NCBI GenBank assembly: GCA_047495785.1
Contig: JBLDXI010000033.1
Coordinates: 744,001-808,000 of the forward strand
Length of the DNA stretch: 64,000 nucleotides
Reading direction: 5' to 3'
From: Lepidodermella squamata
Taxonomy: Eukaryota > Animalia > Gastrotricha
Part shown: positions 3,163-64,000 of the stretch, piece by piece
How the letters are laid out: every line of letters begins with the position of its first letter
How positions within the stretch are numbered: position 1 is the stretch's first letter
Position numbers and translations under genes: made by a program
The notes under the pieces: generated by a model
Seen by the model: the letters and a program-made list of their open reading frames with translations, nothing else
What the model was told of the DNA's origin: nothing
Databases searched by the model: none

Positions 3163-4727
3163 TTAGTGTTTTCCTGGGTCCGTCGGAACCCTGGTTTTGG
3201 AGCGGGTGGTTAGCCCCCCCTCCCTTGCTATGATATTACTTGGGTCCACCTCCCTACGAATGTTCGCAAATTTTCCCGAGTTTTCCGGAAGTCGGCTTTG
3301 CTGAGATTGCACTTCCGGTTGAGTCGAAGGTTGAGAGACGCTCGCGCCGTCAGGTCCAGTGCTTTTGGTCAGCAGGGCAGACAAATTCTTAGCATTTACT
3401 ATCGGCTTCCCTGCGGAGATAGCCTTAGCTCGTTGTAACACCTTGTTTGCCGCCTGCTGCATGGGAGAGGGTCCACTATCCTTGTACTTCGCCGCGAGTC
3501 GATTCATGACCTCTGTTTGTGTAGCCTTAAACGGTTGTGATAGCGCAGTTGCCACCGGTGCGGGATCTTCTCGTTCCCATGCAAACTCGGGAGTACTGCT
3601 TTCTCGCTGCGCCATCGGTTCCCTTGTCGTTTGACTTGCTCCGATTGCTTCGCTCGCTGTCATTCTGGCGACTCTCTCCTCCCAGCTGACTGCTGAATTA
3701 TCGGTGGCTGGTTGGGCGGTCTCGCCTGCTGCCACCATCTCGGCGACGCTCTGCTCCCAACTTCTTTCACGATAGGGCTTGAGCCGATTTCGATGGACGA
3801 CCATTTTTGCTCCATCGTCGATGCACTCGATCTCGTAATTTCTTTCGTCCAGGATGTCCTTCACCTCACAGACTTTGGACCACAAAGCCGTGAACTTTTT
3901 CGGTTGTCCCACCGGTATTGCTGGATCGTACAGGCAAACTTTCTGACCGATTTCCAGCGGCTCGGCATTTTTCGAATTTTTGTCGTGTGCAGCTCGCTGC
4001 TTTTCCCGGGCCTTCTCGAGTTTGTCGATTGCCATTTCGTGTGCTGCTTTGAGGAACTGCCGGGTTTCCTCCGCGAATTTCTCCACCGGACGGGTCGCTG
4101 CCTGATCTTCTGTGTCGAATAGCCAGGCATCAATGCGCATAGGTGGGTTTCTTCCCATTTGGAGTTGCGCCGGGGTCATGCCGTGCGAGTCGTGCACTGA
4201 TGTGTTGTACGATCGAATTGCGTCGGGGATGAACAGATCCCAATCTTTCGGTTTGTTTTCGTCCCTTATCTTCGTGACGATGTTTTCGAGTGTCCGGTTC
4301 ATCCTTTCGATAAAGCCATTGCATTCGGGATGGTATGCTGTTGTATGGACGTGCTTCGTGCCCCATAGATTGCATACTTCTTCGACCACCTTCGCTTCGA
4401 AGTTCGTGCCTTGATCGTTCAGTAGTTGCATCGGGCTCCCCCATATGCTTACATATTCTTTCAGGCACTTGAGCACTGCTTCCGCTGTGGTTGAGCGTAG
4501 TGGATATGCCGCGATCCATTTCGTGAAGTGGTCGCCGATTAGCAGGACGTGCGTGTGTCCGCGATTCGAGGTTGGGTGTATCGGTCCCATCATGTCCCAA
4601 CAAACTAGTTCTCCCGGCGCGCTAGTCTCAATCGACTTCATCGGCGCTACCGGTTTAGGGTTTGGCGCATTCGCTTTTTGACATCGCGAACAAGTTTTCA
4701 CGTATTCTTCTGCGTCGGCTTCGTAGT
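3163..4727 (-). pseudogene. 5'-truncated pol: integrase (rve) plus C-terminal extension
   Basis: YVKTCSRC (only the CC half of HHCC). D (WDMMGP), D (NDQGTNF), then E 35 residues later (GFIERMN). VVHRNRLKPY tail. The frame begins directly after the PBS. Confidence 0.9.
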
Positions 4728-4744
4728 TCCCACCGCTGCCACCA
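4728..4744 (-). other. Primer binding site, tRNA-Leu type
   Basis: Minus strand TGGTGGCAGCGGTGGGA, 1 nt from the LTR. Complementary to the TCCCACCGCTGCCACCA 3' end of animal tRNA-Leu(AAG/TAG). Confidence 0.85.
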
Positions 4745-4745
4745 A

Positions 4746-5234
4746 TGTAACCGCTGGGTTCTTTATCCAACAAGTCAACTCTAGTGTTTCGTCTCTACGC
4801 TTTATTATCAGCAATTATTATAACTCGACTCTAGCAATGCTACTACCTGAACTACTAGCGGTGTAACAAAGCTAATGTTCATGGTGTTTATATAGTGCTG
4901 TACCAAGCTGTTGTCTTGTTAGCGCTGCCCATAAAAGGATAGATCGGATTACCATTTACGGCTTGCTTTGATCCATCGATGTTACCAAATATGGTGAGCT
5001 GTATAATTAGCTGTCGGTATCGATAATGCGAGTTGTTACCGTGTAGATTAAGCGTAGTGCGAATGATTGACAGGTGTAGGTGCGTCGGTGCCGGTGCATT
5101 GCGTAATGCACGCACTCACAAGATATGGCTAAGTACATACACACCAAGAGCGGTAATGTTATGTCATGCGTAACAAGGTGTAAGAGAGTGTATCAAAAAT
5201 ACTTAGCGCGCTGAGGTTATATTCAGCCGCTACA
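4746..5234 (-). repeat. 5' LTR
   Basis: Second copy of 183-671, adjacent to the PBS on the minus strand. Confidence 0.95.
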
Positions 5235-10429: not shown

Positions 10430-12224
10430 ATGGCCTTCTCTTTCGCTAACAATGCTGGTTTCGACGGTCTCTCTGCCAAGTTCGGTCAATACAACCAAAC
10501 TGGTCTGGCTTCCTCGGCTACTACCGGCTTCGGTGGCATTAGCAACTTTGGCACTCAAATCAACAACAACGTCGCGGCCCAAATCGGTGCCAAGATCGGC
10601 CACTCAATCGGTCAAGAGTACGGTGCTCAGCTCGGTGCTGCCATCGCCGGTCACCTGAACGCCACCTTCGGAGCCGAGTGGGCAGCCCAGCTCGGAGCTG
10701 CCCACGGCGCTGAGGTCTTGGCTGAGTTGGGTGCCCAACTTGCCGTCTTCGCTGCTGCCACTGGATTCGGCGCCCAGTCGACCGCCCAACAGGGTGCCCA
10801 GTGGGGTGCTCAGGCTGGCGCCCAGTTGGCCGGTGTTCTGGCTGCCAAGCTCGGCGGACAGGCTGCTGGTGTCTTCGCCAACAACCAGGCTATCACCCAT
10901 ATCGGTGGCTCGATCTTCTCGCAGGCTGGTGCCAAGCTAGGAGCTGTCGTCGCTGCTCAGATCAACGGCGGCGACTTCGGTGCTGGTGCCAACATCACTG
11001 GCAACTTCGGCAGCTTCAACGCCCTCAACAACGGTCTATTCGGCGGCCTGAACGGCTACAACGCCGGCCTTTTCGGTGCCAACCACCTCAACAACTTTGG
11101 TGGCGTTTTCGGCGGTAACGTCAACCACTTGGCTGGCGCCTACAACAACGGTCTGTTCGGTGGTGCCAACAACAACTTCGCCAACAACTTCTCTGGCCCC
11201 TTCGGTGGCAACGCTACCTTCAACGGTCAGCTCTCTGGCAACTTCGGCGCCAACACCCTCGGCGGTCTCTTCGGTGGTGCCAACCTCGCCAACCAGGCTG
11301 GTCTCTTCGGTGGTGTTTTCGGCAGTAACGTCAACCACTTGGCTGGCGCCTACAGCAACGGTCTCTTCGGTGGTGCCAACAACAACTTCTCTGGCCTCTT
11401 CGGTGACAACGCTGCCTTGAATGGCAACTTCTCGAGCAACTTTGGCGCCAACACCTTCGGTGGCCTCTTCGGTGGTGCCAACAACAACTTTGGCAACTTC
11501 TCTGGCCTCTTCGGTGGTAACACTGCCTTCAACGGCCAGTTCTCTGGTAACCAACTGAACACCTTCGGCGGTCTCTTCGGCGATGCGAACTTCGCCAACC
11601 AGGCTGGTACCTTCGGTGGAAACTTCAACGGTCACCTGAACTCCCACTCGGCTGCTGACCAGCTGTACAACATCGCCTTCCGCCCGTCCAGCCAGGCCGA
11701 GCTCTACACTCTGACCAACCCGGTGCAGTACGTCAACAACCAAGGCAAGCGCCAGCTGTTCCTCGCCTTCGAGCTCAAGGGCTTCAAGCCTGAGGAAGTC
11801 ACCGTCACCCTGAACAAGGCCGAGCGCGCCGTCGTCGTCGAGGCTGCCTACGAGGCCAAGGACGGCAAGGAGCACACCGTCGCCCGCAAGTACTCGCGCA
11901 AGTTCGTCCTGCCCGAGGTGAGACTTTGATAAAACTGACCTATAAATAACCTTAATTTTCCGATTATTCAAGACTCTCGCCAAGGTCGACCTGGCCAAGG
12001 TTGAGCTCACCTCGCAACTGAATGCCGATGGCTACTTGTTCGTCCAAGCCGAGCTGCCTCAGTTGACCACCGAAGAGATCGCCAAGCTGCCGTTGTCTCA
12101 CAACCACCTCAACCAGATCGCTTTCAAAAAGACCCACAGCAGCGCCCTGTACGGCAACAACAACAACAACGTTTTCGCCCACCTCGCCAACAACGTTACG
12201 CCTGTTACTGTCAAGTCCGCCTAA
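10430..12224 (+). CDS. Small heat-shock (HSP20/alpha-crystallin) protein with long Gly/Ala and GLFG/Asn-rich N-terminus; exons 10430-11917, 11973-12224
   Basis: Spliced alpha-crystallin domain FELKGFKPEEVTV...RKYSRKFVLPE|TLAKVD...TSQLNADGYLFVQAELP. 55-nt GT-AG intron. Strong C-ending codon bias. Confidence 0.9.
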
Positions 12225-49595: not shown

Positions 49596-50131
49596 ATGCT
49601 AGTGAATTTTTTCTTCATCGCAACTGTGCTGCTTTGCCTTGTCGATTTCGTTCGATCAGAAGATGAAGTACCTGAAGCCGTTAATTCCACTGAGCCGGTT
49701 GAAAGTTTAGCCGCTGTAGCTAAGGCCTTGGTCAACAAAGGCAGCGACGAAGAGCGTAAGCTAAAAAATCGAATTCGTAAAACATTCTGATCATTTTTTA
49801 CGTCGCAGAGCCCCAAGCTATGAGTATGACCATGATGCGAGAGGTGATGGCATTGGTTATGCTAAAACAACGATTCTGCGATAACCGCAGTCCTCCAAAG
49901 CGGTCGCTGAATGAAGAGCAGATAAACTGCGCCCAGCTCTCGGCAACGGTGACGAAAAAGCTGTTGTTCGTGACGAATTTGATGCGTGAAGAGCAGCAGC
50001 GCCGGCGTTACTTGCATTGCATGAAACTTTTCAAGTCGCAACAAATTTGCACTCAGACCGGGAGTTTTTACCTCTGGGCGCAGACTCTCGCGAAGGAAAT
50101 CATGCATGGCAAAAATGTCGTTGATGCTTGA
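49596..50131 (+). CDS. Secreted helical 4-Cys family member 1
   Basis: Signal peptide, phase-1 intron, C...KR...C...QQRRRYLHCMKLFKSQQICTQTGSFYLWAQTLA. Confidence 0.85.
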
Positions 50132-50540
50132 ATAAAAACACGCTATTAGGTTTCCCTTAATTATAATGTTTGTCTCCATCTAATTGTTGAACTTTTTGTA
50201 TTTTGTACGGTTATCAAACTTTCATTTTCCGATAAGTCCGACGTCGAATGGTCCTAGGTTTCATGTTTCTCAAGTTTATTGCGACTATTAGCTGTGAGAT
50301 TGATGTACACAAGTGACATCAACGAAGGACATGGATGATGTTTTTATTTATAAGTTTGTACCTGCTGTTTTCGCACGTGGGCGCATGCGTGCATACGCTG
50401 CGCAGAATTTCGTCGCGAGAAGTAGATCAGGCCTCACATAATTAATTTTGCGAAAAATTAAGTTCTTGGAACCGCATGAGAACACGTGGCTGGACCTACA
50501 TTTCTGAGTTCATTGTCACAATCTCATTTTTCAATCGAAA

Positions 50541-51219
50541 ATGAAATCAAAAGCTCTGAGAGCTGTGATTCTCGGAGCCTTCCCGATTGTTTTTGGCATG
50601 GATATGATGGAAGCATGGCGAGCCTTATCGTCCACCTTAAATAAGCATGAATGTGAGTATGATTCCCACCAAAATGACCCCCGTAATTTTTTCAATTTTT
50701 TCAGCTGCAGTAGCAGACTATACCTTGAAATCCCTCGCCAGAGCTATAATTTCAGCCAAGAACTTTCGAGATGAATGCGACTTGAATGTAACAACAACTT
50801 CGATACCTTTCATTACCCAAACCAACCCTCCACGGCTCAACGTAGTCAGAGCATTGAGGACAAAATCTCTTAAAAAGTCGCCTCGGCGAAATCAGACTGT
50901 CTCGCAACGGAAAATTCAGCGGAAACTCATCGCTTCGGGTTTCCATAGATTCGGGCCAAAGATGGCTGCTGGGATGTTGAGTCATATTCGGGAGGTTAAT
51001 GGCATGGCTCTGTCGTGCAAAAATGCTGGGGAGATTTTAAATCTTAGAATCAAAACTATGGTCAACTTCCTGATAAGTCTCCAGCATAGACAGCGACTGG
51101 ACACGTGTATGCTCATCTTCAAATCAGAAAATATTTGCAGACAAAGAAGTTCGTTCTTCGTTTGGGCACAGCAGTTGGCTCGGGCGATAATGGATGGCCG
51201 TGTTCAGTTTAATTCTTAA
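50541..51219 (+). CDS. Secreted helical 4-Cys family member 2
   Basis: Signal-like N-terminus, phase-1 intron, QHRQRLDTCMLIFKSENICRQRSSFFVWAQQLA. Confidence 0.85.
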
Positions 51220-51840
51220 TTTTGCATAATTAAATAAAAGATGACCGTTAACAAAGGAAAAGTGGGGTTTTGATGCCGCTTTCAAGATCAATGAACAAGG
51301 AGTCGAGCGATATCAATAAGAGGTTGATAGTCATCAGGGCTGCTGAGAAAATGGGCTTCAAAGTGTGCGGTTGAACACGGCTCATTTTGAAAAAATGCGC
51401 GCTTAAAAAATTGAATTTTTTTATTGCATCAGCCTAGACAACACTGTAACAGATAGGAAACTAACGATCTTTGCATAGTGAATTTATTCGAGCTGTTATT
51501 ACAAAAAGGGCGGCACGCGACCAATTTTTATGTCACCCAACGCCCTATCCGCCCATGATAATTTTAATTAATTTCAAAAAATAAAAAAGGAACAGGTACC
51601 TCTTTCAAAAATTTTGGATTTTTGCTCATATATAATAGAAGCGGTCCTCTATCTATTGATACCAGGCACACCTAGCGTTCCCCTATGGATAATATTCTAA
51701 AATTCGGCAAAAAGGGCTAGAATTGGTGATTTTCGGCAAAATTGCCATTATTCTGCGGCGGCTGGCTCTTCCGAAATTTTTTTAAAAATTTGAAAAATTT
51801 AGTTTATCCATATTGAGAATTTTCCGACGATATAAAATTT

Positions 51841-51999
51841 GCCCGGCAGATAACTTATTTCGATTTCGGATTTTTTCTGAGGCCGAAAAATTATTATTCG
51901 CTAGAATATCTCCGAACATAGCGACGTTGTGAGAGAATTCAAAGTCCAATGTGCACGGCCGAAAATAATCCGAAAACCGAAATAAATTATCTGCCGGGC
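51841..51999. repeat. Inverted repeat with ~45-bp arms
   Basis: GCCCGGCAGATAACTTATTTCG... / ...CGAAATAAATTATCTGCCGGGC. Confidence 0.7.
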
Positions 52000-53708
52000 T
52001 ATTTTCTTCCGCGCAGTGGTAATTTTTGAGGTAACCTATGTGAGGGGATTATGCTAGATATTCAACAAATTTGATGGGTTCAAGGTAGCGCTTTCACGCC
52101 AACCTGAATCGACAACTTTTCGGAACTTCTAAATCCTCCTCCGCCAAACCCCAAGTAAAGACTTTTCCTATATTAAGAATTAAGAATATAGAGCGTGGGT
52201 ATACAATGAAAAAGCCTTGCATTTTTTACGATCCCAGGAGGAAATCCCTGGAATGCGAGCTATTTTGGATCCTGATCAAGATAATTTGTCACTTTTTGGC
52301 ACCCATATTAATAAACTCATCCCATTGAGTCTCATCCAAAAGGTCAAATCAGTATAAATACGCCTCGTGGTTTCGATCGCATGAAGCCTTGAGACTTGAG
52401 CCAAAAAGATCAATTTCAATTTCGCCTGGGCAGACAATTACAACAGAGCTTGTATTATAATTTCAGGGGCAGCATTATCTTCTTTATTTCCGCAAGTGCC
52501 TCGATTGTTCTGCGCTGTTTCCTCCCCGATGTCTCCGCTGTGGTGTACGAGCCTGTCACAAATTGTTTTGCCGAAGCCAGACTTCTCCACGAGCCTCAAT
52601 TTAACCGTATTCCCAGACCCCACGCCGCTTTCTACACTTGCCAACATATTTCAATAAACGACCTGCCAAACCACTTTTCAACATAAATTTCATCAATATT
52701 TTAGGCTGGTATGAACAACTACTAAAGACTTGAGCAAATCATGTGAATTTTGTTTCAATGCTAGAAATCCCAAGATTCTCCAAGAAATACTGAGTCCTCC
52801 TGCTTTAGGCTTGTTATAGGCCCTTGCGCGGTATCAGCAGTTATGAATGGATCCCAAAATTACTTAAGCTGAGAGATTTACTCACCCAATACGTTTGAAA
52901 TTCGCAAATAGAGAGCTGGGTATGAATCTCTAGAGCGAAGCGAGACAAATCTTGCTAAATAACAGGAAATCAAGCTGAAATTTTATTTTTCGGGGTTAAT
53001 CTCTTTAAGCTTTAAGTAACCAATGACAGAATCTAATACATGCGATTCACACTTGAGACGCATCTCAAAGGGAAATATGTCCATGGCTCGAATCTGGATT
53101 CAAAAAAATGGCTCCAACATAGCGAAAAAAGTGATCCCCAATCTATTAATCCTATATAGTAAAATCTTTGGTTTATGGATGAAATTACGATATTATTTGT
53201 CCGATAAAAGTAGACAGACTGCAAAAAAGTGTTTCTCAAATTAGCTACAACGGAATCCTATTTTATTGTCGGGGATATTGACAATAATTTATAAATAAGT
53301 ATATATTCAGCATTCAGCAAATGAACATCAGCAAAGCTCAAATGTCGCTGCTGTAGCGGGTAATCTCCAGACCAATCTTTTACGACTTACATTTAGTCAC
53401 AAAAAGATTGCATAAGCATTCTCCTATAAAAAATGGGGCACATTTTATTTATCAGCGGAACAAATCGCCAGCGGGGGATTGAGACGTGTAATTTTTGTCC
53501 GATAATGACCTCGCGCGTCAAATGAAATTACTCCAGATTTTACGCTGACTGGCTTTATTCTATTTTACTACTACTACTGGCCATTGAGATATCGATTGTT
53601 CACACATTATTCATCGGAATGCGTTGCACCTCTTGAGACACCACCGACTTGCCTCTTATTGTAGCATCCACATTGCTAGAAACCGACTGAATTTAAGAGC
53701 AGCTAAAC

Positions 53709-54300
53709 ATGATTTTTCTACTACTATTTGGAACAGCGATATGTCTATCATGCTGCGCCGAGATAGCAGCGAGTAATAATCAACGATCAGACGTATTTGG
53801 CAGTCTCCTGAAAAACATCAGCGCGGACGTTAAGCGTAAGAGTTCCGAGTCCGATTCCTACGCAGGCTCAAATTTCTCGTTGTTTTCTATTCGTCTTTTT
53901 AGCACCTACGAACTTCGTAACCCTGGAAATGCTATCCCGGGCCCTAGTTTCAGCCAAACGATATCAAGAGGCCTGTAAACAACTCACTCAGACGAAGGCT
54001 GAATCTAAACTCGCTCAACCGGAGGAAAATGTTCAAAAATTGCTATTTCACCGGCACAGAGCATCAAGAATCCCGGTGAAACGCTCCCAGCAAGATCAAC
54101 CCGATCCTACAGAGATGTCCTGCTCGAACGTAGCTAACATAGTAGCATCTCGGGTGAAATCTCTGGCTATATTCATGCGAGTTCAGCGGCAGAAAAAACG
54201 CCTCGAAAACTGCATGAAAGTGTTCAATTCTCAGGACGTATGCCACCAACGCGGGGCATTTTTTGTATGGGCGAAACATGTAGCACAGGATATGGTATAG
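53709..54300 (+). CDS. Secreted helical 4-Cys family member 3
   Basis: Signal peptide, phase-1 intron, KRLENCMKVFNSQDVCHQRGAFFVWA. Confidence 0.85.
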
Positions 54301-54724
54301 GAACGGAAACAAATAAAGAAAAATATCCTCGTCCAAGCTGTCGCTTTTGAACATTAATTAACCCGAAGACGGACTCCCTCGGAGTTGTTAGTATAATTAA
54401 ATGGGGAAATGCGGAACAAATTTCCGGTAAAATTAGGATATGACGTGTGATGACTTTTTGCAGTGAATGTCGGTCATGCTTGTTAACCCGTCTAAAAGAG
54501 ATAACCAGACATGTTAGCACCTTTTAAATTAATGAAGTACTAGGCCTAGCACTGAGGAATGCACCTGTCGTCATGGGATTCAGAGTTTCTATAGAAATGA
54601 CAACCACATTGGACGCATTAGGTAAATTGAAATATTTGCGAAGGTGTGATAGCTGATACGGAAATAAACCTGGGCTGCTCCCAGTACTCTTGCAACAGCT
54701 TGGTGATTATATAAAAATTAAAAC

Positions 54725-55396
54725 ATGAGATTTTTGTACGGTCTACTCTTGTCATGTTGCTTTTACAACAATGTTACCAGCAACGCAACAACTGACGCGA
54801 ATGTTATGAGGTGGAGGGAGCTGTTATCTAGACTGACATCACAACAATGTAAGTCCGAATTGCCTATTGAAAAAACCCTATTTGGACTTGTTCTTTCAGC
54901 TGTCATGGCCGGTGTGTCTCTGAAGCTGATAGCTCGTTCGGTAGTCGATGCACTCCGGGAGCATGTAGCATGTGAAAGTCGCTTGTTCACCACAACAAAA
55001 CCACCTCCGACATTCTCCCATGATATTGGAGCATCCAAGTACCGCTCCAGTAAATTCAAACCCGTCGCAAAAAGCCGACGATCAATTGCTAAGGCCCATG
55101 CAGTGAAACGATCTGGAGGTGGCAAAAGCAACTTACAAGCCCTCATTGAAAAGTACGAGAGCAAGTCAGCCGACAAAGTTCAAAATCAAGCCAGCTGTGC
55201 TCGTACTAGTAAGGTCTTGGAGGGCCGAATTCGAGCTCTCGCTAATTTCATGCACAACCTTCAACAGCGGCAACGTCTTGAGACGTGCATGAGTGTTTTC
55301 CGATCGGCTGAAATCTGCCACCAGCGCGGGTCTTTCTTCGTTTGGGCTCAGCAATTGGCAAAGGGGATCATGAGTGGAAGAACTACCATAAGCTAA
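54725..55396 (+). CDS. Secreted helical 4-Cys family member 4
   Basis: Signal peptide. In-frame intron-like segment (gtaagt...tttcag). QQRQRLETCMSVFRSAEICHQRGSFFVWA. Confidence 0.87.
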   Translation: MRFLYGLLLSCCFYNNVTSNATTDANVMRWRELLSRLTSQQCKSELPIEKTLFGLVLSAVMAGVSLKLIARSVVDALREHVACESRLFTTTKPPPTFSHDIGASKYRSSKFKPVAKSRRSIAKAHAVKRSGGGKSNLQALIEKYESKSADKVQNQASCARTSKVLEGRIRALANFMHNLQQRQRLETCMSVFRSAEICHQRGSFFVWAQQLAKGIMSGRTTIS

Positions 55397-55878
55397 TAAG
55401 TCATGAGAGAGATCAAAACACTGTGTTGTTTGTTGTTTTTCTAATGAGCCGTTTATCTTTCTTTGTTTTGCTATAGTAAATAAGTCACCGCATTCGATTC
55501 CTATTTTAGATCTAACATGGGCGACTTGGCTTTGTTCACGTTGATTTACCGGACTAGGATTTCCACCCTCAAGGCTGTTTTGTGAGGACTCTGATTCCGA
55601 GAACACGTCTGCTTATAAGCGCCAGTAATCCTGATCAACAAATAAGCACTTTACGCTTGATTAGCGCGCGCGTGAACTAATCCTTCAGATATTGCACCTG
55701 ATCTTGTCACAAAAAATACAGCATCGATAACAGAATCGACAATTTGCTAATGCATACTACGTGCTCATTTGATATTTGAGAAGTGCAAATCGCTATCTGA
55801 TTCACGTCATTGAATTGCCGTGATTCAATTCTTTTACAGGCGATTAGAAAAATATGAAGAATTTTTCCAAGAATTAGA

Positions 55879-56534
55879 ATGGTTCTACGAGAAAATTTTG
55901 TAATTCTCTCTCTCGCTGCTTTGTTTGGCCTTACTCATGAACAACGCTTAGGCCAAGCAGTGGGCCTAACAAATTTGGCGGATAAAGGTGAGTGAACTTT
56001 TATTTCAAAATTATTAATTAAAAACCCCACCTTAATAAATTAGGCTCGCTGAATGACATGACTATGAGGCTACTTACAAGATCTATTGTCGCCGCGAGAC
56101 TTTTCAAATCAAAGTGCGACTCATTTAAAACGAATGAAGCACTCATTTCTAATTTCAATACCTCGGCCAAGGCCAGTGTTAAGAAGATTGGTAAACAATT
56201 TACTGATACGAAAAAAGTTAGCCTGAAATCAGCGAACAATCTGTCACCAACGGCTTTATTTCATCTCACCGGCGTGTTAACTCAGGTCAACGTCAACAAT
56301 TACATCAAACTAGCTGCGTCTATTTCGGTAGGCAATGCCGATATGTCGTGCAGCAATGTGGATCGGATTTTCAACGATCGCATACAATTTTTAACAGCGT
56401 TCCTGCAAACAATGCATAAACAACAGCGCTTTGACGCCTGCATGAACGTGTTTCACTCTGCTGATATTTGCCACCAACGCGGCTCGTTCTATTTGTGGGC
56501 TCATGTTCTGGCAAGGGGCATTATGGATGGATAG
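55879..56534 (+). CDS. Secreted helical 4-Cys family member 5
   Basis: MVLRENFVILSLAALFG signal (not in the ORF track), phase-1 intron, QQRFDACMNVFHSADICHQRGSFYLWA. Confidence 0.85.
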
Positions 56535-57074
56535 TTATTGTTTGCTTAGTTTTTATTCAATCATTTAGATGAATCAATTTTTCATTATTTAAAATGTTTA
56601 TGAATTTCATTAAAATCACTAGTCCGATGATAATTCCTATCAAATTTCCAACAGGTTCCTAGAAAAAACAGGTTCTAGAAAAATGTATGTTAAAGCTTTT
56701 TAGTAAAATTAAATCTTTTAGGTGATTGAGCTTTTAGGAACTTTCATTAAGAGGATTCTGTAGTATGACAAATACCCCTCTGAATTGAAAATGAGATTTC
56801 ATTATGCCGCAATGAGCGATCGATCGTCAAACAATGCGTTTTCGTATTATGCCTCTTAGTAGGCGTTTTTGGATACTATACCGCGGTCATTCATCAACTT
56901 CCGACAAGACCCGGTATCGACATAACACGGCTACGGCGAAACGGGGGCAGTCAAAAGCTAATGAATCAAGCATGCGAGAGAAAAAAACAAAAATACATAT
57001 ATGAAAACCTTTCCCAGCTGTAATTTTAACAGTCTGCCTTATAATCGCAGTATAATAATAAATTTAGCAGGCGA

Positions 57075-57761
57075 ATGAAATTCTACGTTTTTGGATTATT
57101 TCTGTTACTTTGGCATGAATCCCGATGTGAGACACCCGTTTTCCTGCAGTCACTGCTGTCAAAGATCAGCCTGAAGGGTGAGCTCAAATTCATAAGACTA
57201 ACCATCAAGTTTCAAAAACGGCGTACTTCTTTAGATGAAATCAGCCAAATAACAGCTAGGACTCTAGTTCGAAGTATAGCGAGTGCAATGCGGTTTCAAC
57301 AGGATTGCAAGGCTGCGAAAAAAAGCTCGAACAATAGCACCCTGCCTTTGGCTAGAACAGGTCCGAAAATGGGGGCCACGAACCCTCTAACAACGGTGAT
57401 TCTTCCAGCGTCACGTCGGACGAGCTTTTTTGCGAAGCCAAAGATGGCCCAACCGTCTTTCGTTCGCACTGCAGTTTTGATAGCCAATCCCTCAAAGCCA
57501 AATTCGAACTTGAAAAACGAAGGATACAACGGTGATTCAATCCTGACTTGTTCGAATGTCTCCAAAATCCTGGCCAGTCGACTTAACAGCCTAGCGCGTC
57601 TGTCAAAGGTTGCAGAAAAGCGGAAACGGCTCGAGGACTGTATGGCTCTGTTCAAATCGTCCAATATTTGTTACCAGAAGGCTTCGTTTTACATGTGGGC
57701 GCAGAAGGTAGCGAAAACAATTATGGAGGGAAAGACAGTTACTGCAAAAAGTAGCGTCTGA
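57075..57761 (+). CDS. Secreted helical 4-Cys family member 6
   Basis: Signal peptide, in-frame intron-like segment, KRLEDCMALFKSSNICYQKASFYMWA. Confidence 0.87.
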   Translation: MKFYVFGLFLLLWHESRCETPVFLQSLLSKISLKGELKFIRLTIKFQKRRTSLDEISQITARTLVRSIASAMRFQQDCKAAKKSSNNSTLPLARTGPKMGATNPLTTVILPASRRTSFFAKPKMAQPSFVRTAVLIANPSKPNSNLKNEGYNGDSILTCSNVSKILASRLNSLARLSKVAEKRKRLEDCMALFKSSNICYQKASFYMWAQKVAKTIMEGKTVTAKSSV

Positions 57762-58248
57762 TTTTTTAGATCGCATTGATTTATGTGGAATAAAAGTCGC
57801 AAATAGCACTCTCAGGGATAATCATATGAAGATGTCATCCAGGAGCCTGGGTGAACTCTCACATCTACAGAATTGGGACCAAAAAACCATGGCCCCCGCT
57901 TACATTTTGGACAAGGGCGGTAATAATTTATTTAGCGATCGATTGTGCGGCATTCGCGTCATCAGATCGACTCATACATTAGCGTCGTATGAAAAATGCG
58001 GGAGCATCCATATTGTAGCCGCTCTGGTAGCCACTGCTTTTGAAAAGCGTCGCCCCGCCACCTCCGACAGCTAGACTTGCGCACGTAAACATCACTTATC
58101 ACCCGTAATAAAAGCAATCGACTCTCAATCGCCATAGATTGCACCAAGTGCGGACAGCGTGACCAATATCTTCACCCATGATTTCATCCAACAATTTTTT
58201 TTTTAGCATGCCTAATTGCTGGTTTTTTTTAGGTTCCCCTTTTTTTTC

Positions 58249-58944
58249 ATGAAAAATTCTCTGGTATTGGTCGTCATTTCCGTGCTGCTGGTAGATCTGG
58301 CACAGGGCAGCTGGCGTCGCAAACGAGAGGAGAGTGATGCTAGAACAGCGTTTAACTCAATGTGGCGCTCTGTTTCGAGTAGCCTCAGCCCTGAAGAATG
58401 TTAGTAATTAAAAAAAACGTCATAATAACTGATTGATAGCTGTATAAAACCATTAGATAAAATCGCTGAGATTGCCATGAGGTCACTGATGCGTGAGGTC
58501 TTCGCAGCTTCAAAACTGAAAAAGTCTTGCGCCAGCGACAAAAAATCATCCGGTGTTCAAAAGCGATTAGCCGATGACATAGAAGCAAGCCCAGAAGTTG
58601 ACGATTCCGAGACGCCTGCATCAGACGGAAGCGATGAGGCAGACGAGGAAATTCAGAGACAATCGCCATCTATTGGTGCCAGTCAGTTACTAATCAGAAC
58701 CGGGGGTAAAAATTTAGCAGATTATTTACGTGGCGCCAACGTCTTAAACTGCTCTAACGTCAACGCAATTTTGGCTAAAAGGATCAAATCCCTTGGCGGC
58801 TTCCTCTCAAATCTTCAGAGGCGGCAGCGTTTGGTAACTTGTATGAGCATATTCAAATCGGCGGACATTTGCCACCAGCGTGGATCTTTCTACCTATGGG
58901 CTCAGCAAGTTGCAAAAGGTATAATGGAGGGGGATGCGGTCTGA
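58249..58944 (+). CDS. Secreted helical 4-Cys family member 7
   Basis: Signal peptide followed by RRKR, phase-1 intron, acidic linker, RQRLVTCMSIFKSADICHQRGSFYLWA. Confidence 0.87.
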
Positions 58945-60511
58945 CGCCAACATTTTTAGCTTACTAATTTTTAGCCTTTATTTTTACTTTATTTTTCACT
59001 TCGTTTTTCCTGATTGACCTTATCATGGCTTGGACAGCTTTTATGTTTGGCGCGCAAGCAACTTTTTAACCATCTCATAAAAGATGCATGTTTCACTGTG
59101 AATAAAACGCTATGCTGGTATTCCTAAGCTAAAATTTCCTACATTTCGCAAAATTTCCTACGCACCTGGTGCGTCATTTCTGCTAAATCATTCCAAAGTT
59201 TTCCAGCTAAATCATTGTTGAATGATTTTCGTATCGATGTGTTTTTGAATAGAGAATTAGGGCCTCTGAAGTAACTTTTCCTTATAACCAGCAACTATTA
59301 CATGGGATCAATCAACGAGTTTAAGTTAACATTCCATTTGGATCAAGGCAAAACTATTTCTTTTTTTTAGTTTTTGAGACAGAATTTTGCAGGTAATGTA
59401 TACAACTCAAATTGATACACAATTGAAGCTTTCCGTTCTACTTCGGCGAGGATTCACTGACTCTCCTACGAGTTTTGCAAGTGACTGAAGTTCAAGAAGG
59501 AACGTCTTGGAGCTCGGAGACCATCCTTCTGAAAGAATGGTTCCGAGAGTACCGTATATTCAGGGGGTGGTAATGCTTTTGAGTTAAAACAAGGGAAGAA
59601 CCCCTTTGTAGAGAGGCTCCATTATGACAAACGTCCATTTATGACGTCACCTATACTTCATAAAATGAAAATGTTCCACTTAAAAATGATGAATAGCACA
59701 CTTATTAACCGATGCTTATTTTCGTTCGAGGAAAGTAAACCCAGCACCTTAGCATCTTTCTAACTATACACAGCCATGAAACCAGCCATTGAAGGGCGAT
59801 TTAAAGAGCTATACCGCCTAATTCTCAGCATCATCAGAAAGTGTAACGTCACCCCAAAAGCATTCTTCCCAGCTGGTATTGAAGTATTGAAATCCTCGTT
59901 AAATGTTCTAGGGCCAGTGCTACACTGGCTAACATTGCGCATCCGAAAATCTTGCATAAAATATGAAGTGAAATAATATGGGGAGCTCAAAATGAAAGAT
60001 ATACCCTGAATAGCAAATTTCTCGGGGCTTTCGGAAAACATAAGCGAGTCCGTTATATACTTACCAGCTTATGGGGAAGTTTATTTTATATATAGGTATT
60101 CCATGGACATTGCAGCAGTCGGAATCATGTCAGGGTAAAAGATGATATTGGTATTTAGAATAGACATTTTCAAGACTCACGTCGCGTTTAAATGTGATCA
60201 ATTTACAGGTTATAATGTTTTGTTCAAAAGTCAAAAGCTGAAAACAGATCTATGTATTGGCAAGAGTGAAAAGTCACAGCCATCGTCTATTTTCACAAGG
60301 TCGATCGTCTTTATTCGAATAAACATCGAACTCAGCTAATATTCTGTCGCGACTTAGCCTACGTGGCTCACATGAGTTCAGAAATAGCGTGTTGATGATG
60401 TTGAGATCGCCCGCGAATTATCAAGTTACACGCGTGCGCCAGCAGGAGTTTCGTAGTTTTTTTCAGAAAATAAAATCAAGATTTTCAGGATCCATGTAAT
60501 TTTGTTCAAAT

Positions 60512-61215
60512 ATGGGTTCTAAATGCAGCTTTTTTGCGCTGCTAGTCCTTGCGATTATACTCGCAATCAGTTGTGCCAGCGAGCAAGCGAATGACGACAG
60601 GAATCCGTCTGCAAGCCTGATATCGAAGGTCAAAACGCTGCACAGTAAGTTTCTTTGATTCTTCTTTTGCAAGCACACTCTGTTTCACTTCTTTCTTCAG
60701 GCAGAATGATTGAGATTTCCCTCCACGGTTTAACAAGATCAATAGCCAATGCTGCTAAGTTTCGAAAGGCTTGCGAACTTCAGACTCACTCTGCTGAGAC
60801 TGAAGATCTGACTACTACCAGTCCTTTGCTCGAGTCAGACTATCACAGTGATTCAATGATGGAACCGTCCAGCTCTATTCGTAGGAGTCGCGGACTCTAC
60901 CGTAGCGGGGCCTACGTCTTCGCGAAAGCTCCTACCAAGTACTACTTGATTCCAGCGCGGAGCAAGAGGTCGTCCGAGCCAAGAGTGCAAAATAATTCGA
61001 ACGATGCCGTGATGACGTGTTCGAACGTTTCGGCAATCATTAGCAAGCGCGTGGTTCAGCTAGCTAATTTGCTGCAGCACATGCAGCAACGCCAACGCCT
61101 CGAAGCGTGCATCGGCGTTTTCAAGTCGGTCGAAATCTGCAACCAGCGCGGTTCTTTCTTTGTGTGGGCTCAGCACGTCGCCCGTGGCATCATGGAGGGG
61201 CGAATAGGAAATTGA
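60512..61215 (+). CDS. Secreted helical 4-Cys family member 8
   Basis: MGSKCSFFALLVLAIILA signal, phase-1 intron, RSKR in the linker, QQRQRLEACIGVFKSVEICNQRGSFFVWA. Confidence 0.87.
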
Positions 61216-62903
61216 GCCCTTATTGACAGACAGAGTTTTTGTACATTTTATAATCCATTTATAACATACTTTTGCTTCGTAAATTTGTATAGTTGCATCA
61301 AAGCTGCAAAACATGCACAAAAAGCTCACGTTGCGCGGAAAATATTCGGGTATTCATTATTTCGTCCCTATTGGCCTGAAATAGCAAAATTAAAACCGTG
61401 ATCTTTCATTTTCCAAAACTGGGCGAAAATATCATGGCCTAGTTTTACAGGCTAAATCGAAATGGTTTCTTTGTTTTCTAAAATTTCCCACCATTGCCTG
61501 TTACCGAATTCATTACGACCATGATCAAAGGCTACGATTTATTGCAGTAACTAATGGCATTTGATACTAGTGTTACAAGCTTGTGAACCATAGTATGCTA
61601 TCTAGAACCTGTCTTAAAGCCTGGTCACTTCTTGATTAATTGAGTTTCAAATTTATGAAATAAAAGTGGGAAGACCGAAAGTCGAAAGTATTAAGTATTA
61701 AGTTTTAATGATATTGAATAAAATATTCTGTGGAAAAATAGATCTGCTAAGGTTTCTGTTATTAAAGCGAGCACGCGGGCCTGGCGGGAAACTTTAGGAT
61801 ATTGCACGTTTTGCAGCCCTGAATGTAATGGCGTGATAAGATAAAAACGTCTTGGCAAGAATGTTGACCTCAGGATCAAGTCTGTTTTGTTTCGTTGGGC
61901 AGCGAAAAATGTGTAATGTAGCTTCAATTATGGCAATGCTCGCGGCCTAATGTGGGCCTGGCGGGAAATAACAGGGGTTCTGCATGTTTTGTTGCACTGG
62001 AGCGTGCCTTGGAGCGTGATACCTATGACAATAAAATCGGCGTGATTCCTTGTAATTTCACGTAGCTTCTTAGAGAATTTAACACACATGAAAGTTTATA
62101 ATTCATAAGAGCCAAAATAATTTCCGGAACAATTTTCCCGATTTCGACTTTCGACATTTGACAGGTTCAATCAAAAGCGATTGCTAAGCTCGAAAGCTGG
62201 ACAAACGAACATTCAGTTTTAATGAAGATTAACTTTTGCAATCTAAATGGAAACTTGATTAACAAAGGCGTGATGAAAATGACATCCAGACTGAAAATAA
62301 TTGCACTATATGAAAGACTTACCTGAAACCTGAAAATATTACATGTCTTTGGCATCGAGCTTTTGGGACGGACCATAAGCAATTTAATACAAGTAAGCCG
62401 ATTGCAGTGAACATGATAGAAGCTTGATGGAAGAATCTTTAAATCACCTGATACATAATTTGGCTAGCAACTGATTGTTTTATAGCATATCTATCTTTTA
62501 GTTTGAAAAAATCATACTCGATCTTCAAACCAATTTACGAAATGTGATGGTCACTGAGTGGCCTGGCGATGTGTGAAATGCGATTTGTCCTCTCGCCGAT
62601 ACGCGAGGGTGCGTACCTATCCTTAGTGACTTAGTATCAATTGCTCGCACATCAATGGATGAAGCGCATCACGCTCATTTGTCACTCAATCTCGCGGGCA
62701 AATTAGCTGATGAGTTGACCGAAGTGACTAGGAAAGCCACGTGATTCATCGCGGCAAGGTTTATTAATTATATAAGGACGCGTAGAAGTCTAACCTGATC
62801 AAGCAATTTATTATCCGATGCAGCGGAATGAACAAACTTCACGCTACGCTGATATCTCAGAGATATTTCTAGAGGCAACAAATAAACACTGAGCTATGCG
62901 AAA

Positions 62904-63383
62904 ATGCTGTTTGTTAGACGAGCAATATACGTACTTGTCCTGCTTATGCAGTTTTGCCTCTCGATCAACGGTACTTCATTTCCGAGAAGCTCCCGCAGGC
63001 GGACCACCACTTCGCAGCCACCCACAACGCTACTCCAAGCAACTTATCCGGCAATCCTGGAGATCGGCAACAACGAAAGCGGCCGGTTAGTATTCATCGA
63101 TTCAGCATCATTCAAATCAGCGATTGGCAAAGTAGCCGACAAAATCACTCGAAAAATTACGCTAGAAGCCCGGCTGATCACAAAATGCCGCCGTAAATTT
63201 GGCCTTTCGTCCAAATGCAATCCGAACCACTTGAAAGAGCTGGCTAGATCTCTGTTCTACCTTCGCCGCTTCTTGAAGCGAATCGAGGACCTGGATGTTA
63301 TCGAGTATTGTAGATTTGACAGCAACCAGAGCAAACCCATTTGCAGGCAATTCGATCGCATTTTATCTCAGATTTTGTCCTAG
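62904..63383 (+). CDS. Secreted 4-Cys helical protein, divergent family member
   Basis: Signal peptide, then C-x9-C, a long helix, and C-x10-C. No intron evident. Confidence 0.7.
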   Translation: MLFVRRAIYVLVLLMQFCLSINGTSFPRSSRRRTTTSQPPTTLLQATYPAILEIGNNESGRLVFIDSASFKSAIGKVADKITRKITLEARLITKCRRKFGLSSKCNPNHLKELARSLFYLRRFLKRIEDLDVIEYCRFDSNQSKPICRQFDRILSQILS

Positions 63384-63597
63384 CGCGAAATTAAAGAGCA
63401 ATAAACATTTTAGTGAGATTGCCTGTTTTGGTTTCAAAATGTTCAACATATTTGTGTAAGTGCTACGTTTTAAGAAGCTTTGGTATGTGTGATGACGTAA
63501 GTCACGACGTTTTTCATCACTTAGTGATGATGAGATTCGGTCACTCGTTGAAAAGATCCCGGTCATCAGAGAGGTAATTTTTTACACTCGATAAGAG

Positions 63598-64000
63598 ATG
63601 AGTTCATTACGCATTAGTTTGATTTTTCTGTTTGTCAACTTTTCATTCCTTTATCCTGCGGAAGCATATGTCAGTTCCAGCAAATTCAGACTGAACAACG
63701 ATCGGGAAATGGCGAAAAATTCGTTGAAAAAGCTGCATGAAGCGCTGACAGCTGTAAATGAAGCTTGTAAGTCCTCTTCAACAAATGCTACAACAATCAA
63801 ACCATCGATTGGTCAATTAAACGATACCGGAAGTCTCCTGTGGAGCGGCTCGGACCACTGCGAGATAAAGCGAGCTTTATTAAGGCGGTTCGCGAAATCA
63901 ACCCTCAAAATGCTGAAGGACGCTAAAATCCGGCACGTTTCCGGAATTCATGGTTTCATTACTGAGCTATTCGACCATGACAAGAAACCTGTCAGCCGCT
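63598..64000 (+). CDS. Secreted protein, probable divergent family member, truncated by the window end
   Basis: MSSLRISLIFLFVNFSFLYPAEA signal, helix-C-linker-C-helix. The frame is open to the window edge. Confidence 0.6.
   Translation, partial: MSSLRISLIFLFVNFSFLYPAEAYVSSSKFRLNNDREMAKNSLKKLHEALTAVNEACKSSSTNATTIKPSIGQLNDTGSLLWSGSDHCEIKRALLRRFAKSTLKMLKDAKIRHVSGIHGFITELFDHDKKPVSR

Follow-up and report, generated by a model that had tools for sequence, protein, structure and literature searches.

A tandem gene array in the gastrotrich Lepidodermella squamata belongs to a large, undescribed family of secreted-type proteins

The window analysed here is a 64-kb stretch of the gastrotrich Lepidodermella squamata, positions 744001–808000 of contig C33 in a 121-Mb, 151-contig assembly (C1, C30, C46, C58 and C60 below are likewise contigs of that assembly, and coordinates without a contig label are those of the window). 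At 49596–61215 it carries a tandem array of eight intact two-exon paralogues, all on the + strand, that encode small secreted-type proteins with a conserved C-terminal motif. We find that this array is a small part of a family that is large, lineage-restricted and undescribed, and that the family core is, in a confident structure prediction, a three-helix domain. Comparison of the window genes with their relatives inside and outside the genome leads us to favour an intact, cationic scaffold over the hormone-like precursor, cut into two chains, that an initial annotation of the window had envisaged.

The gene array and its family

The eight genes (g1–g8; Table 1) were located from the list of open reading frames (ORFs) and by a six-frame scan of the whole 64 kb with the regular expression C-x9-C ... 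SF(F/Y)xW, which matches at exactly eight sites, with no ninth. Upstream of each site lies an ATG exon with a hydrophobic start, which we call signal-peptide-like throughout because signal peptides were called only by a hydropathy heuristic. In all eight genes the exons are separated by a predicted GT...AG intron of 51–67 nucleotides (nt) in phase 1, placed 17–24 codons before the first cysteine of the layout (Cys1), and the last part of exon 1 codes for an amphipathic segment that is only weakly conserved. Introns and splice junctions were predicted from the sequence, by eye for g1, g7 and g8 and then by a systematic search of all members. Of the 23 long-form members found genome-wide, 19 have a phase-1 intron predicted at the same place; for one member at C30 and three at C46 no spliced model was obtained, and three of these four read as single exons. 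The order helix-Cys1, variable linker, Cys2-helix, C-x9-C, helix recurs in the eight window genes and in 15 more members in the genome, with linkers of 16–81 residues among the window genes. The initial annotation had described eight clear + strand paralogues sharing the C-terminal motif, a signal peptide, a phase-1 intron at a common place and the arrangement of two cysteine-bearing helices around a variable linker, and each of these features was recovered in eight of eight genes.

Table 1 Family genes and divergent neighbours in the window (gene ends of g1–g8 from the ORF list and the motif scan; introns predicted, all phase 1)
Gene	Position	Strand	Exon 1	Intron (nt)	Exon 2	Linker (residues)	Remarks
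g1	49596–50131	+	49596–49755	53	49809–50131	16	shortest linker
g2	50541–51219	+	50541–50652	52	50705–51219	79	
g3	53709–54300	+	53709–53835	67	53903–54300	48	
g4	54725–55396	+	54725–54848	51	54900–55396	74	intron in frame, so that the whole gene reads as a single long ORF
g5	55879–56534	+	55879–55987	56	56044–56534	77	protein stops immediately past the conserved Gly
g6	57075–57761	+	57075–57177	57	57235–57761	80	intron in frame
g7	58249–58944	+	58249–58399	57	58457–58944	73	acidic linker
g8	60512–61215	+	60512–60644	56	60701–61215	81	
g9	62904–63383	+					single exon; divergent, A-type, probable distant relative; Cys1 and Cys2 9 residues apart; second loop C-x10-C
B-type gene (start)	63598–64000	+					runs to about 64134, past the window end; signal-peptide-like, helical, similar cysteine layout

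As a working definition, we take the family to be marked by R-x-x-x-C-x(7-10)-C followed, after 4–9 residues, by F-(Y/F)-x-W-A-x(3)-A-x(2)-I-M-x-G, near the C terminus of a protein of 100–230 residues with a signal-peptide-like start; all eight window genes conform to it. A census of the whole assembly with exon 2 of g7 as the query gave 244 first-look candidates and, from these, at least 150 scored matches, which are spread over about 30 contigs and mostly arranged as tandem clusters. In the fetched loci, a profile of the eight window genes separated 23 long-form members with the full layout from about 45 short-form members of 70–130 codons, which have the last two cysteines only (C3 and C4, those of the C-x9-C element) and no linker. 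Many short forms are single-exon genes with a signal-peptide-like start of their own, and most of the family is without Cys1, Cys2 and the linker. Across a 60-sequence alignment of genome members, the residues C, S, C, F, W, A and A are invariant and R and I near-invariant. A tree on about 90 aligned residues is poorly resolved, and in it the eight window genes do not form an exclusive clade.

The family extends beyond this genome. An exhaustive profile search of 1.84 billion representatives, of the kind that the initial annotation had proposed, returned 94 related clusters (31 at E ≤ 1e-10). The clusters are typically precursors of 100–135 residues, most with the two-cysteine core; 64 of the 94 have a signal-peptide-like start by the same heuristic and 81 carry a looser form of the family pattern. 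All 30 clusters that were looked up come from European Nucleotide Archive (ENA) metagenome assemblies or Logan assemblies of Sequence Read Archive (SRA) runs only, and none of the 30 is named. The contigs of these relatives are eukaryotic and carry genes for Integrator-1, ribosomal protein S2, PIG-U and ARPC5 as well as genes split by short introns. An Integrator-1 fragment on one of them is 49–66% identical, over three aligned pieces, to the copy in this genome, which places the family in at least a set of animals that are related yet distinct. Two tandem long-form genes lie on a Logan contig with a guanine-plus-cytosine (GC) content of 53%. A further subfamily, in which one extra cysteine precedes C3 and another follows IM-x-G, is found on a metagenome contig (L055:1-10387), where at least seven of its genes stand in tandem and two Neur_chan_LBD genes are interspersed among them.

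Two divergent members had also been proposed downstream of the array, and one of them probably stands. The single-exon gene g9 is a probable distant relative of the family by sequence comparison: although it was not picked up by HMMER with the family profile, a profile of its type (A-type) aligns with the family profile in hhalign at 78% probability (E 1.8e-5) over 46 columns, in register across the central helix, the second loop and the F..W motif. Two more A-type genes with the same order of elements and the same 9-residue gap between Cys1 and Cys2 lie just beyond the window end. The other candidate, the gene that starts at 63598, is of a second type (B-type) for which hhalign gives a probability of 1.2% against the family profile; its relatedness is not demonstrable, and membership of the B-type genes in the family is not supported. 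From window position 63598 onward (L031:1598-9179) there are six B-type genes, at first alternating with three A-type genes; the B-type proteins are helical, begin with signal-peptide-like starts and share the layout C-x9-11-C, helix, RRRLR, C-x21-C.

Core domain, disulfide loops and linker

An AlphaFold2 (AF2) model of g1, calculated for exon 2 with the 60-sequence alignment as input (the exon-1-encoded segment lies outside the model), has a mean predicted local distance difference test score (pLDDT) of 84, values of 88–96 in the core and a predicted template-modelling score of 0.63. Its helices span residues 2–23, 40–74, 77–80 and 88–98. Cys1 (residue 23) is at the end of helix 1 and Cys2 (residue 40) at the start of helix 2; C3 (residue 70) lies close to where helix 2 ends, and C4 (residue 80) within the short helix that comes next. 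The invariant F86, W89, A90, A94, I97 and M98 line one face of the last helix. The family core in this prediction is a three-helix domain of about 63 residues, consisting of a long helix that ends in a basic run (R-x-R-L-x-x-C), the C-x9-C loop with its invariant Ser, and a short helix whose F, W, A, A, I(M) and G face probably packs as the hydrophobic centre of the domain. In the window subfamily this core is preceded by an N-terminal helix that bears Cys1, and the central helix opens with Cys2. A homodimer prediction, in a run that did not use the alignment, scored 0.00, which speaks neither for nor against binding. The core is strongly basic: its net charge has a median of +6.5 among the members in this genome and of +6 among the environmental ones, and 80% of members reach at least +4.

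The window paralogues are old: synonymous sites are saturated, with synonymous divergence (dS) above 1, and the frames, splice sites and signal-peptide-like starts are all intact. The one pair of members at a useful distance (C33:925517 and C58:356510; dS 0.19) differs by no nonsynonymous and one synonymous change in helix 1, by 13 nonsynonymous and 8 synonymous changes in the linker (ratio of nonsynonymous to synonymous rates, omega, 0.48), and by one nonsynonymous and seven synonymous changes in the C-terminal domain (omega 0.04). Purifying selection on helix 1 and on the C-terminal domain is thus strong, and the linker evolves fast.

That a Cys1–Cys2 disulfide staples the two helices, as the initial annotation had supposed, is plausible and has indirect support, because the two cysteines co-occur, the g1 model places them at helix ends and the corresponding loop of the A-type relatives is only 9 residues long. 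Both cysteines are present in 23 of the 60 aligned sequences and neither in 32, with five mixed, so that they are present or absent jointly in 55 of 60; the long forms are related to one another, and these are not 55 independent events. The model of g8 fits less well: in it helix 1 continues for 13 residues beyond Cys1, which would set Cys1 further from Cys2 than in g1 and weakens the geometric argument for that protein.

Both flanks of the linker in the g8 model have pLDDT values of 90–96, whereas the 70-residue linker itself is at 47–55 and is therefore predicted to be disordered. Linkers are 19–40% Ser, Thr and Pro, with threonine runs in several, a composition that fits a disordered and perhaps O-glycosylated loop. 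Because Cys1 and Cys2 are only 9 residues apart in the A-type relatives, whose profile aligns in register with the central helix, second loop and F..W motif of the family, the long linker appears to have arisen by growth of a short loop closed by a disulfide. In g2 (50705–51219) and in members at C1, C30 and C60, the linkers cannot otherwise be aligned but have in common a short F-x-R-F-G-like motif in their second half.

Relation to known families and proposed function

The initial annotation had not recognised the family, and our searches bear this out. Word-indexed protein searches with exon 2 of g7 and with the 60-sequence alignment found no match; Pfam gave nothing consistent for nine members or for 60; and a sequence profile search of the PDB found no match at E ≤ 10. 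The comparison of a predicted structure by Foldseek that had been suggested yielded a helical model and, against the PDB, generic helical hairpins only (best E 1.8, not significant). A wide VIA-align search of 48,161 chains again gave generic helical hairpins, with a best Z of 7.1, below the value of about 13 expected for helical models, and feature and shape look-ups in the ESM Atlas reached scores of at most 0.82 with no related cluster. Full-text literature searches by motif strings, sample accessions and rotifer antimicrobial or secreted families returned nothing relevant, and the motif appeared in no paper found.

By topology, the best Foldseek matches are the CsoR/FrmR-type three-helix regulators, which resemble the model in fold only, with a long hairpin and a short third helix (template-modelling score 0.5–0.58 over about 98 columns); these matches, at E 2–7, are not significant, and the regulators, metal sensors of the bacterial cytoplasm, share no motif with the family. 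The A-type relatives, which have two C-x9/10-C motifs in a helical protein, recall the CHCH or twin Cx9C proteins (Cox17 and other Mia40 substrates). CHCH cysteines, however, lie within two antiparallel helices and are bonded from one arm of the hairpin to the other, whereas in the AF2 model C-x9-C brackets an interhelix loop; the main family has a single Cx9C, spanning the end of helix 2, the loop and the short helix. CHCH proteins lack a signal peptide and reach the mitochondrial intermembrane space by import, unlike what the signal-peptide-like N termini would imply here (eight of eight window genes and 64 of 94 outside relatives, by hydropathy), and the CHCH model PF06747 is not among the Pfam matches.

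We consider it very likely that the window genes are intact, old paralogues of a large secreted-type family with the anatomy described above. For their function, the reading that we favour as a whole, with a probability of roughly 40%, is of a cationic three-helix scaffold, secreted and used intact, whose activity, more tentatively, would be the binding of anionic targets. The C3–C4 and Cys1–Cys2 pairs would each close a loop by a disulfide. The Cys1–Cys2 loop would ancestrally have had about 9 residues, like that of the distant relatives next door, and in the long subfamily would have grown into a disordered, fast-evolving insert of 16–86 residues, rich in Ser, Thr and Pro and perhaps O-glycosylated. 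The protein would most likely be secreted and used intact, with no cutting into two chains, and would act most likely outside the cell through variable, positively charged helix surfaces on a conserved scaffold. What it binds we can suggest only tentatively: microbial surfaces, as a host-defence-type effector, or a polyanionic matrix. Small secreted proteins with a conserved hydrophobic core and variable charged surfaces, encoded in tandem arrays at very high copy number, are what host-defence or other extracellular binding families present and are unlike hormone families, which is why a hormonal role is not favoured.

One parallel is with the saposin-like antimicrobials (nematode caenopores and amoebapores), which are secreted, helical, disulfide-stabilised and multi-copy, and with which the family shares a cationic character and a conserved core beneath a variable surface. 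Saposin folds have five helices and six cysteines in a fixed pattern, which is not so here; the saposin models (SapB; PF05184 and PF03489) are not among the Pfam matches, and no saposin is among the fold matches. Several points weigh against the favoured scaffold. In host-defence families the mature regions usually diversify and turnover is recent, whereas the paralogues here are old (dS > 1) and their C-terminal motif is nearly invariant; a cationic charge is also expected of many receptor ligands; and secretion is predicted from signal peptides judged by hydropathy, just as the gene models are predicted from sequence.

An unlikely alternative is that the proteins carry small hydrophobic ligands or are structural components of a secretion (mucus, egg envelope or adhesive), in which case the conserved face would be a pocket or a packing surface. 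It would account for the many small helical proteins with signal-peptide-like starts, neighbouring-cysteine loops, a conserved hydrophobic core and variable surfaces, and for the Ser-, Thr- and Pro-rich, possibly mucin-like inserts. A cavity would, however, be hard to fit into a three-helix domain of about 63 residues, no carrier family was found to be similar, and the repeats or low-complexity bulk typical of structural secretions are absent outside the linker. A comparison can be made with insect chemosensory proteins (CSPs; the OS-D family), small secreted helical proteins of expanded families in which two non-interlocking disulfides between neighbouring cysteines close small loops. The present family is likewise expanded, with small secreted-type helical proteins and loops between neighbouring cysteines, but the CSPs have the spacing C-x6-C-x18-C-x2-C, which differs from that seen here, in about 110 residues that form six helices around a ligand cavity; no sequence or fold match links the two, PF03392 is not among the Pfam matches, and the present family is strongly cationic.

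The precursor proposed by the initial annotation, in which convertases would remove the linker and the Cys1–Cys2 bond would hold together a two-chain hormone, pheromone or cytokine, now appears quite unlikely. The dibasic and furin-like strings that had been listed are present, and every window linker has at least one dibasic site; R-S-K-R occurs in g8, R-P-K-R in the copy at C33:928903 and R-R-K-R just past the signal peptide of g7. A linker predicted to be disordered would be accessible to proteases, a disulfide-closed loop would keep the chains joined after cutting, and the Gly-Lys or Gly-Arg ending of many members could be an amidation signal. Set against composition-matched shuffles of the same residues, however, the 23 linkers hold dibasic sites at the level of chance (34 observed, 35.6 ± 4.9 expected), and the positions of these sites are not conserved. 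Furin-type sites number three against 0.95 expected, two of the three being in near-identical copies of one gene. The conserved central helix, moreover, carries RR, RQR and RRR runs (RRQR/RRRR) that are by sequence as cleavable as the sites in the linker. Most members have no linker, Cys1 or Cys2, and in the A-type relatives the loop has 9 residues. At least 150 genomic matches would also be unusually many for a hormone family, and we know of none that comes near this number. Excision of the linker in the manner of insulin is thus not supported by our analysis, there being no dibasic enrichment, no conservation of position and, in most of the family, no linker to excise.

The parallel with insulin and relaxin prohormones is correspondingly limited. 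Both have a signal peptide (here signal-peptide-like), two helical segments and a variable, disordered connecting segment with basic sites, and a disulfide could hold the two parts together. No similarity of sequence or fold was found, however, and PF00049 is absent from the Pfam matches at E ≤ 1 for any of the 60 members. Insulin, insulin-like growth factor (IGF) and relaxin have six cysteines including a CC pair, whereas this family has two or four and no such pair; the connecting segment is absent from most members; the basic sites are neither enriched nor conserved in position; and the family is far larger.

We regard as improbable, in turn, a role as endogenous ligands or modulators of an expanded set of orphan Cys-loop receptors whose genes are interleaved with the long subfamily. 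The array directly follows Cys-loop receptor arrays (12.6–48.5 kb), and receptor genes lie within 10 kb of long forms at C30:760-770k, C33:920-930k and C58:350-360k, the copies at C33:924-927k and C58:356-358k being among the nearest relatives, outside the array, of the window receptor type; on the metagenome contig L055, seven family genes are interleaved with two Neur_chan_LBD genes. Receptor candidates are, however, so numerous (2530 and 1545 in first-look searches) that by our estimate about 15% of 10-kb windows hold one by chance, and a receptor is nearby at only two of 13 short-form loci and one of six environmental contexts. The C33 and C58 sites duplicate one another, and one inherited ancestral block explains the adjacency as well as functional coupling does. 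The stronger proposal, that cationic helical proteins have co-evolved with orphan Cys-loop receptors as ligands or modulators and that the long subfamily is kept in ligand–receptor gene blocks, is highly improbable; if true, it would define a protein-gated or protein-tuned branch of Cys-loop receptors, loosely comparable to the Lynx/SLURP prototoxins, on a new fold.

That the genes are non-functional, as decaying copies or chance ORFs, is scarcely credible: the gene models do rest on sequence prediction, but frames, splice sites and signal-peptide-like starts are intact in eight of eight despite saturated synonymous sites, omega is 0.04 in the C-terminal domain, and 94 related clusters occur in other organisms.

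Genomic surroundings and significance

Most of the stretch upstream of the family array is occupied by arrays of divergent Cys-loop ligand-gated channel genes on both strands (12680–48513). The Neur_chan_LBD domain has 2530 first-look candidates genome-wide, an exceptional expansion. A search of the genome for the nematode cuticle-collagen domain Col_cuticle_N gave no match, which speaks weakly against a nematode origin, as the control genomes gave none either. At C33:925517-929535 and C58:356510-360506 there are collinear blocks, each with a family gene, a Cys-loop receptor gene and a second family gene. The blocks diverge unevenly, one gene pair at dS 0.19 and the other at dS 0.02, and could be haplotigs, a recent block duplication or a product of gene conversion. 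Elsewhere in the window, a 536-residue ORF at 3163–4773 on the − strand has features of a retroviral-type integrase (a zinc-finger-like start and, by eye, catalytic-core-like motifs) and is probably part of a long terminal repeat (LTR) retroelement; GC there rises to 0.51. A 499-residue ORF at 10430–11929 on the + strand has a long Gly-, Asn- and Phe-rich (GLFG-like) region followed by a C terminus that looks like a small heat-shock (alpha-crystallin-like) domain.

Orphan secreted families are a common finding in poorly sampled animal groups, and as it stands this family is one of them, without a name, a Pfam model, a solved or recognisable fold or a paper. If the gene models hold, 150 or more matching loci make it one of the largest families in the genome, and it also occurs in related uncultured animals represented in environmental metagenomes; a family profile would serve the annotation of many hypothetical genes. 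The compact, easily expressed and disulfide-stapled three-helix domain predicted here would be a candidate for antimicrobial, polyanion-binding and receptor-modulating tests. The long subfamily would, in addition, be a clean case of loop growth, from a short loop closed by a disulfide to a long, disordered insert that evolves fast.

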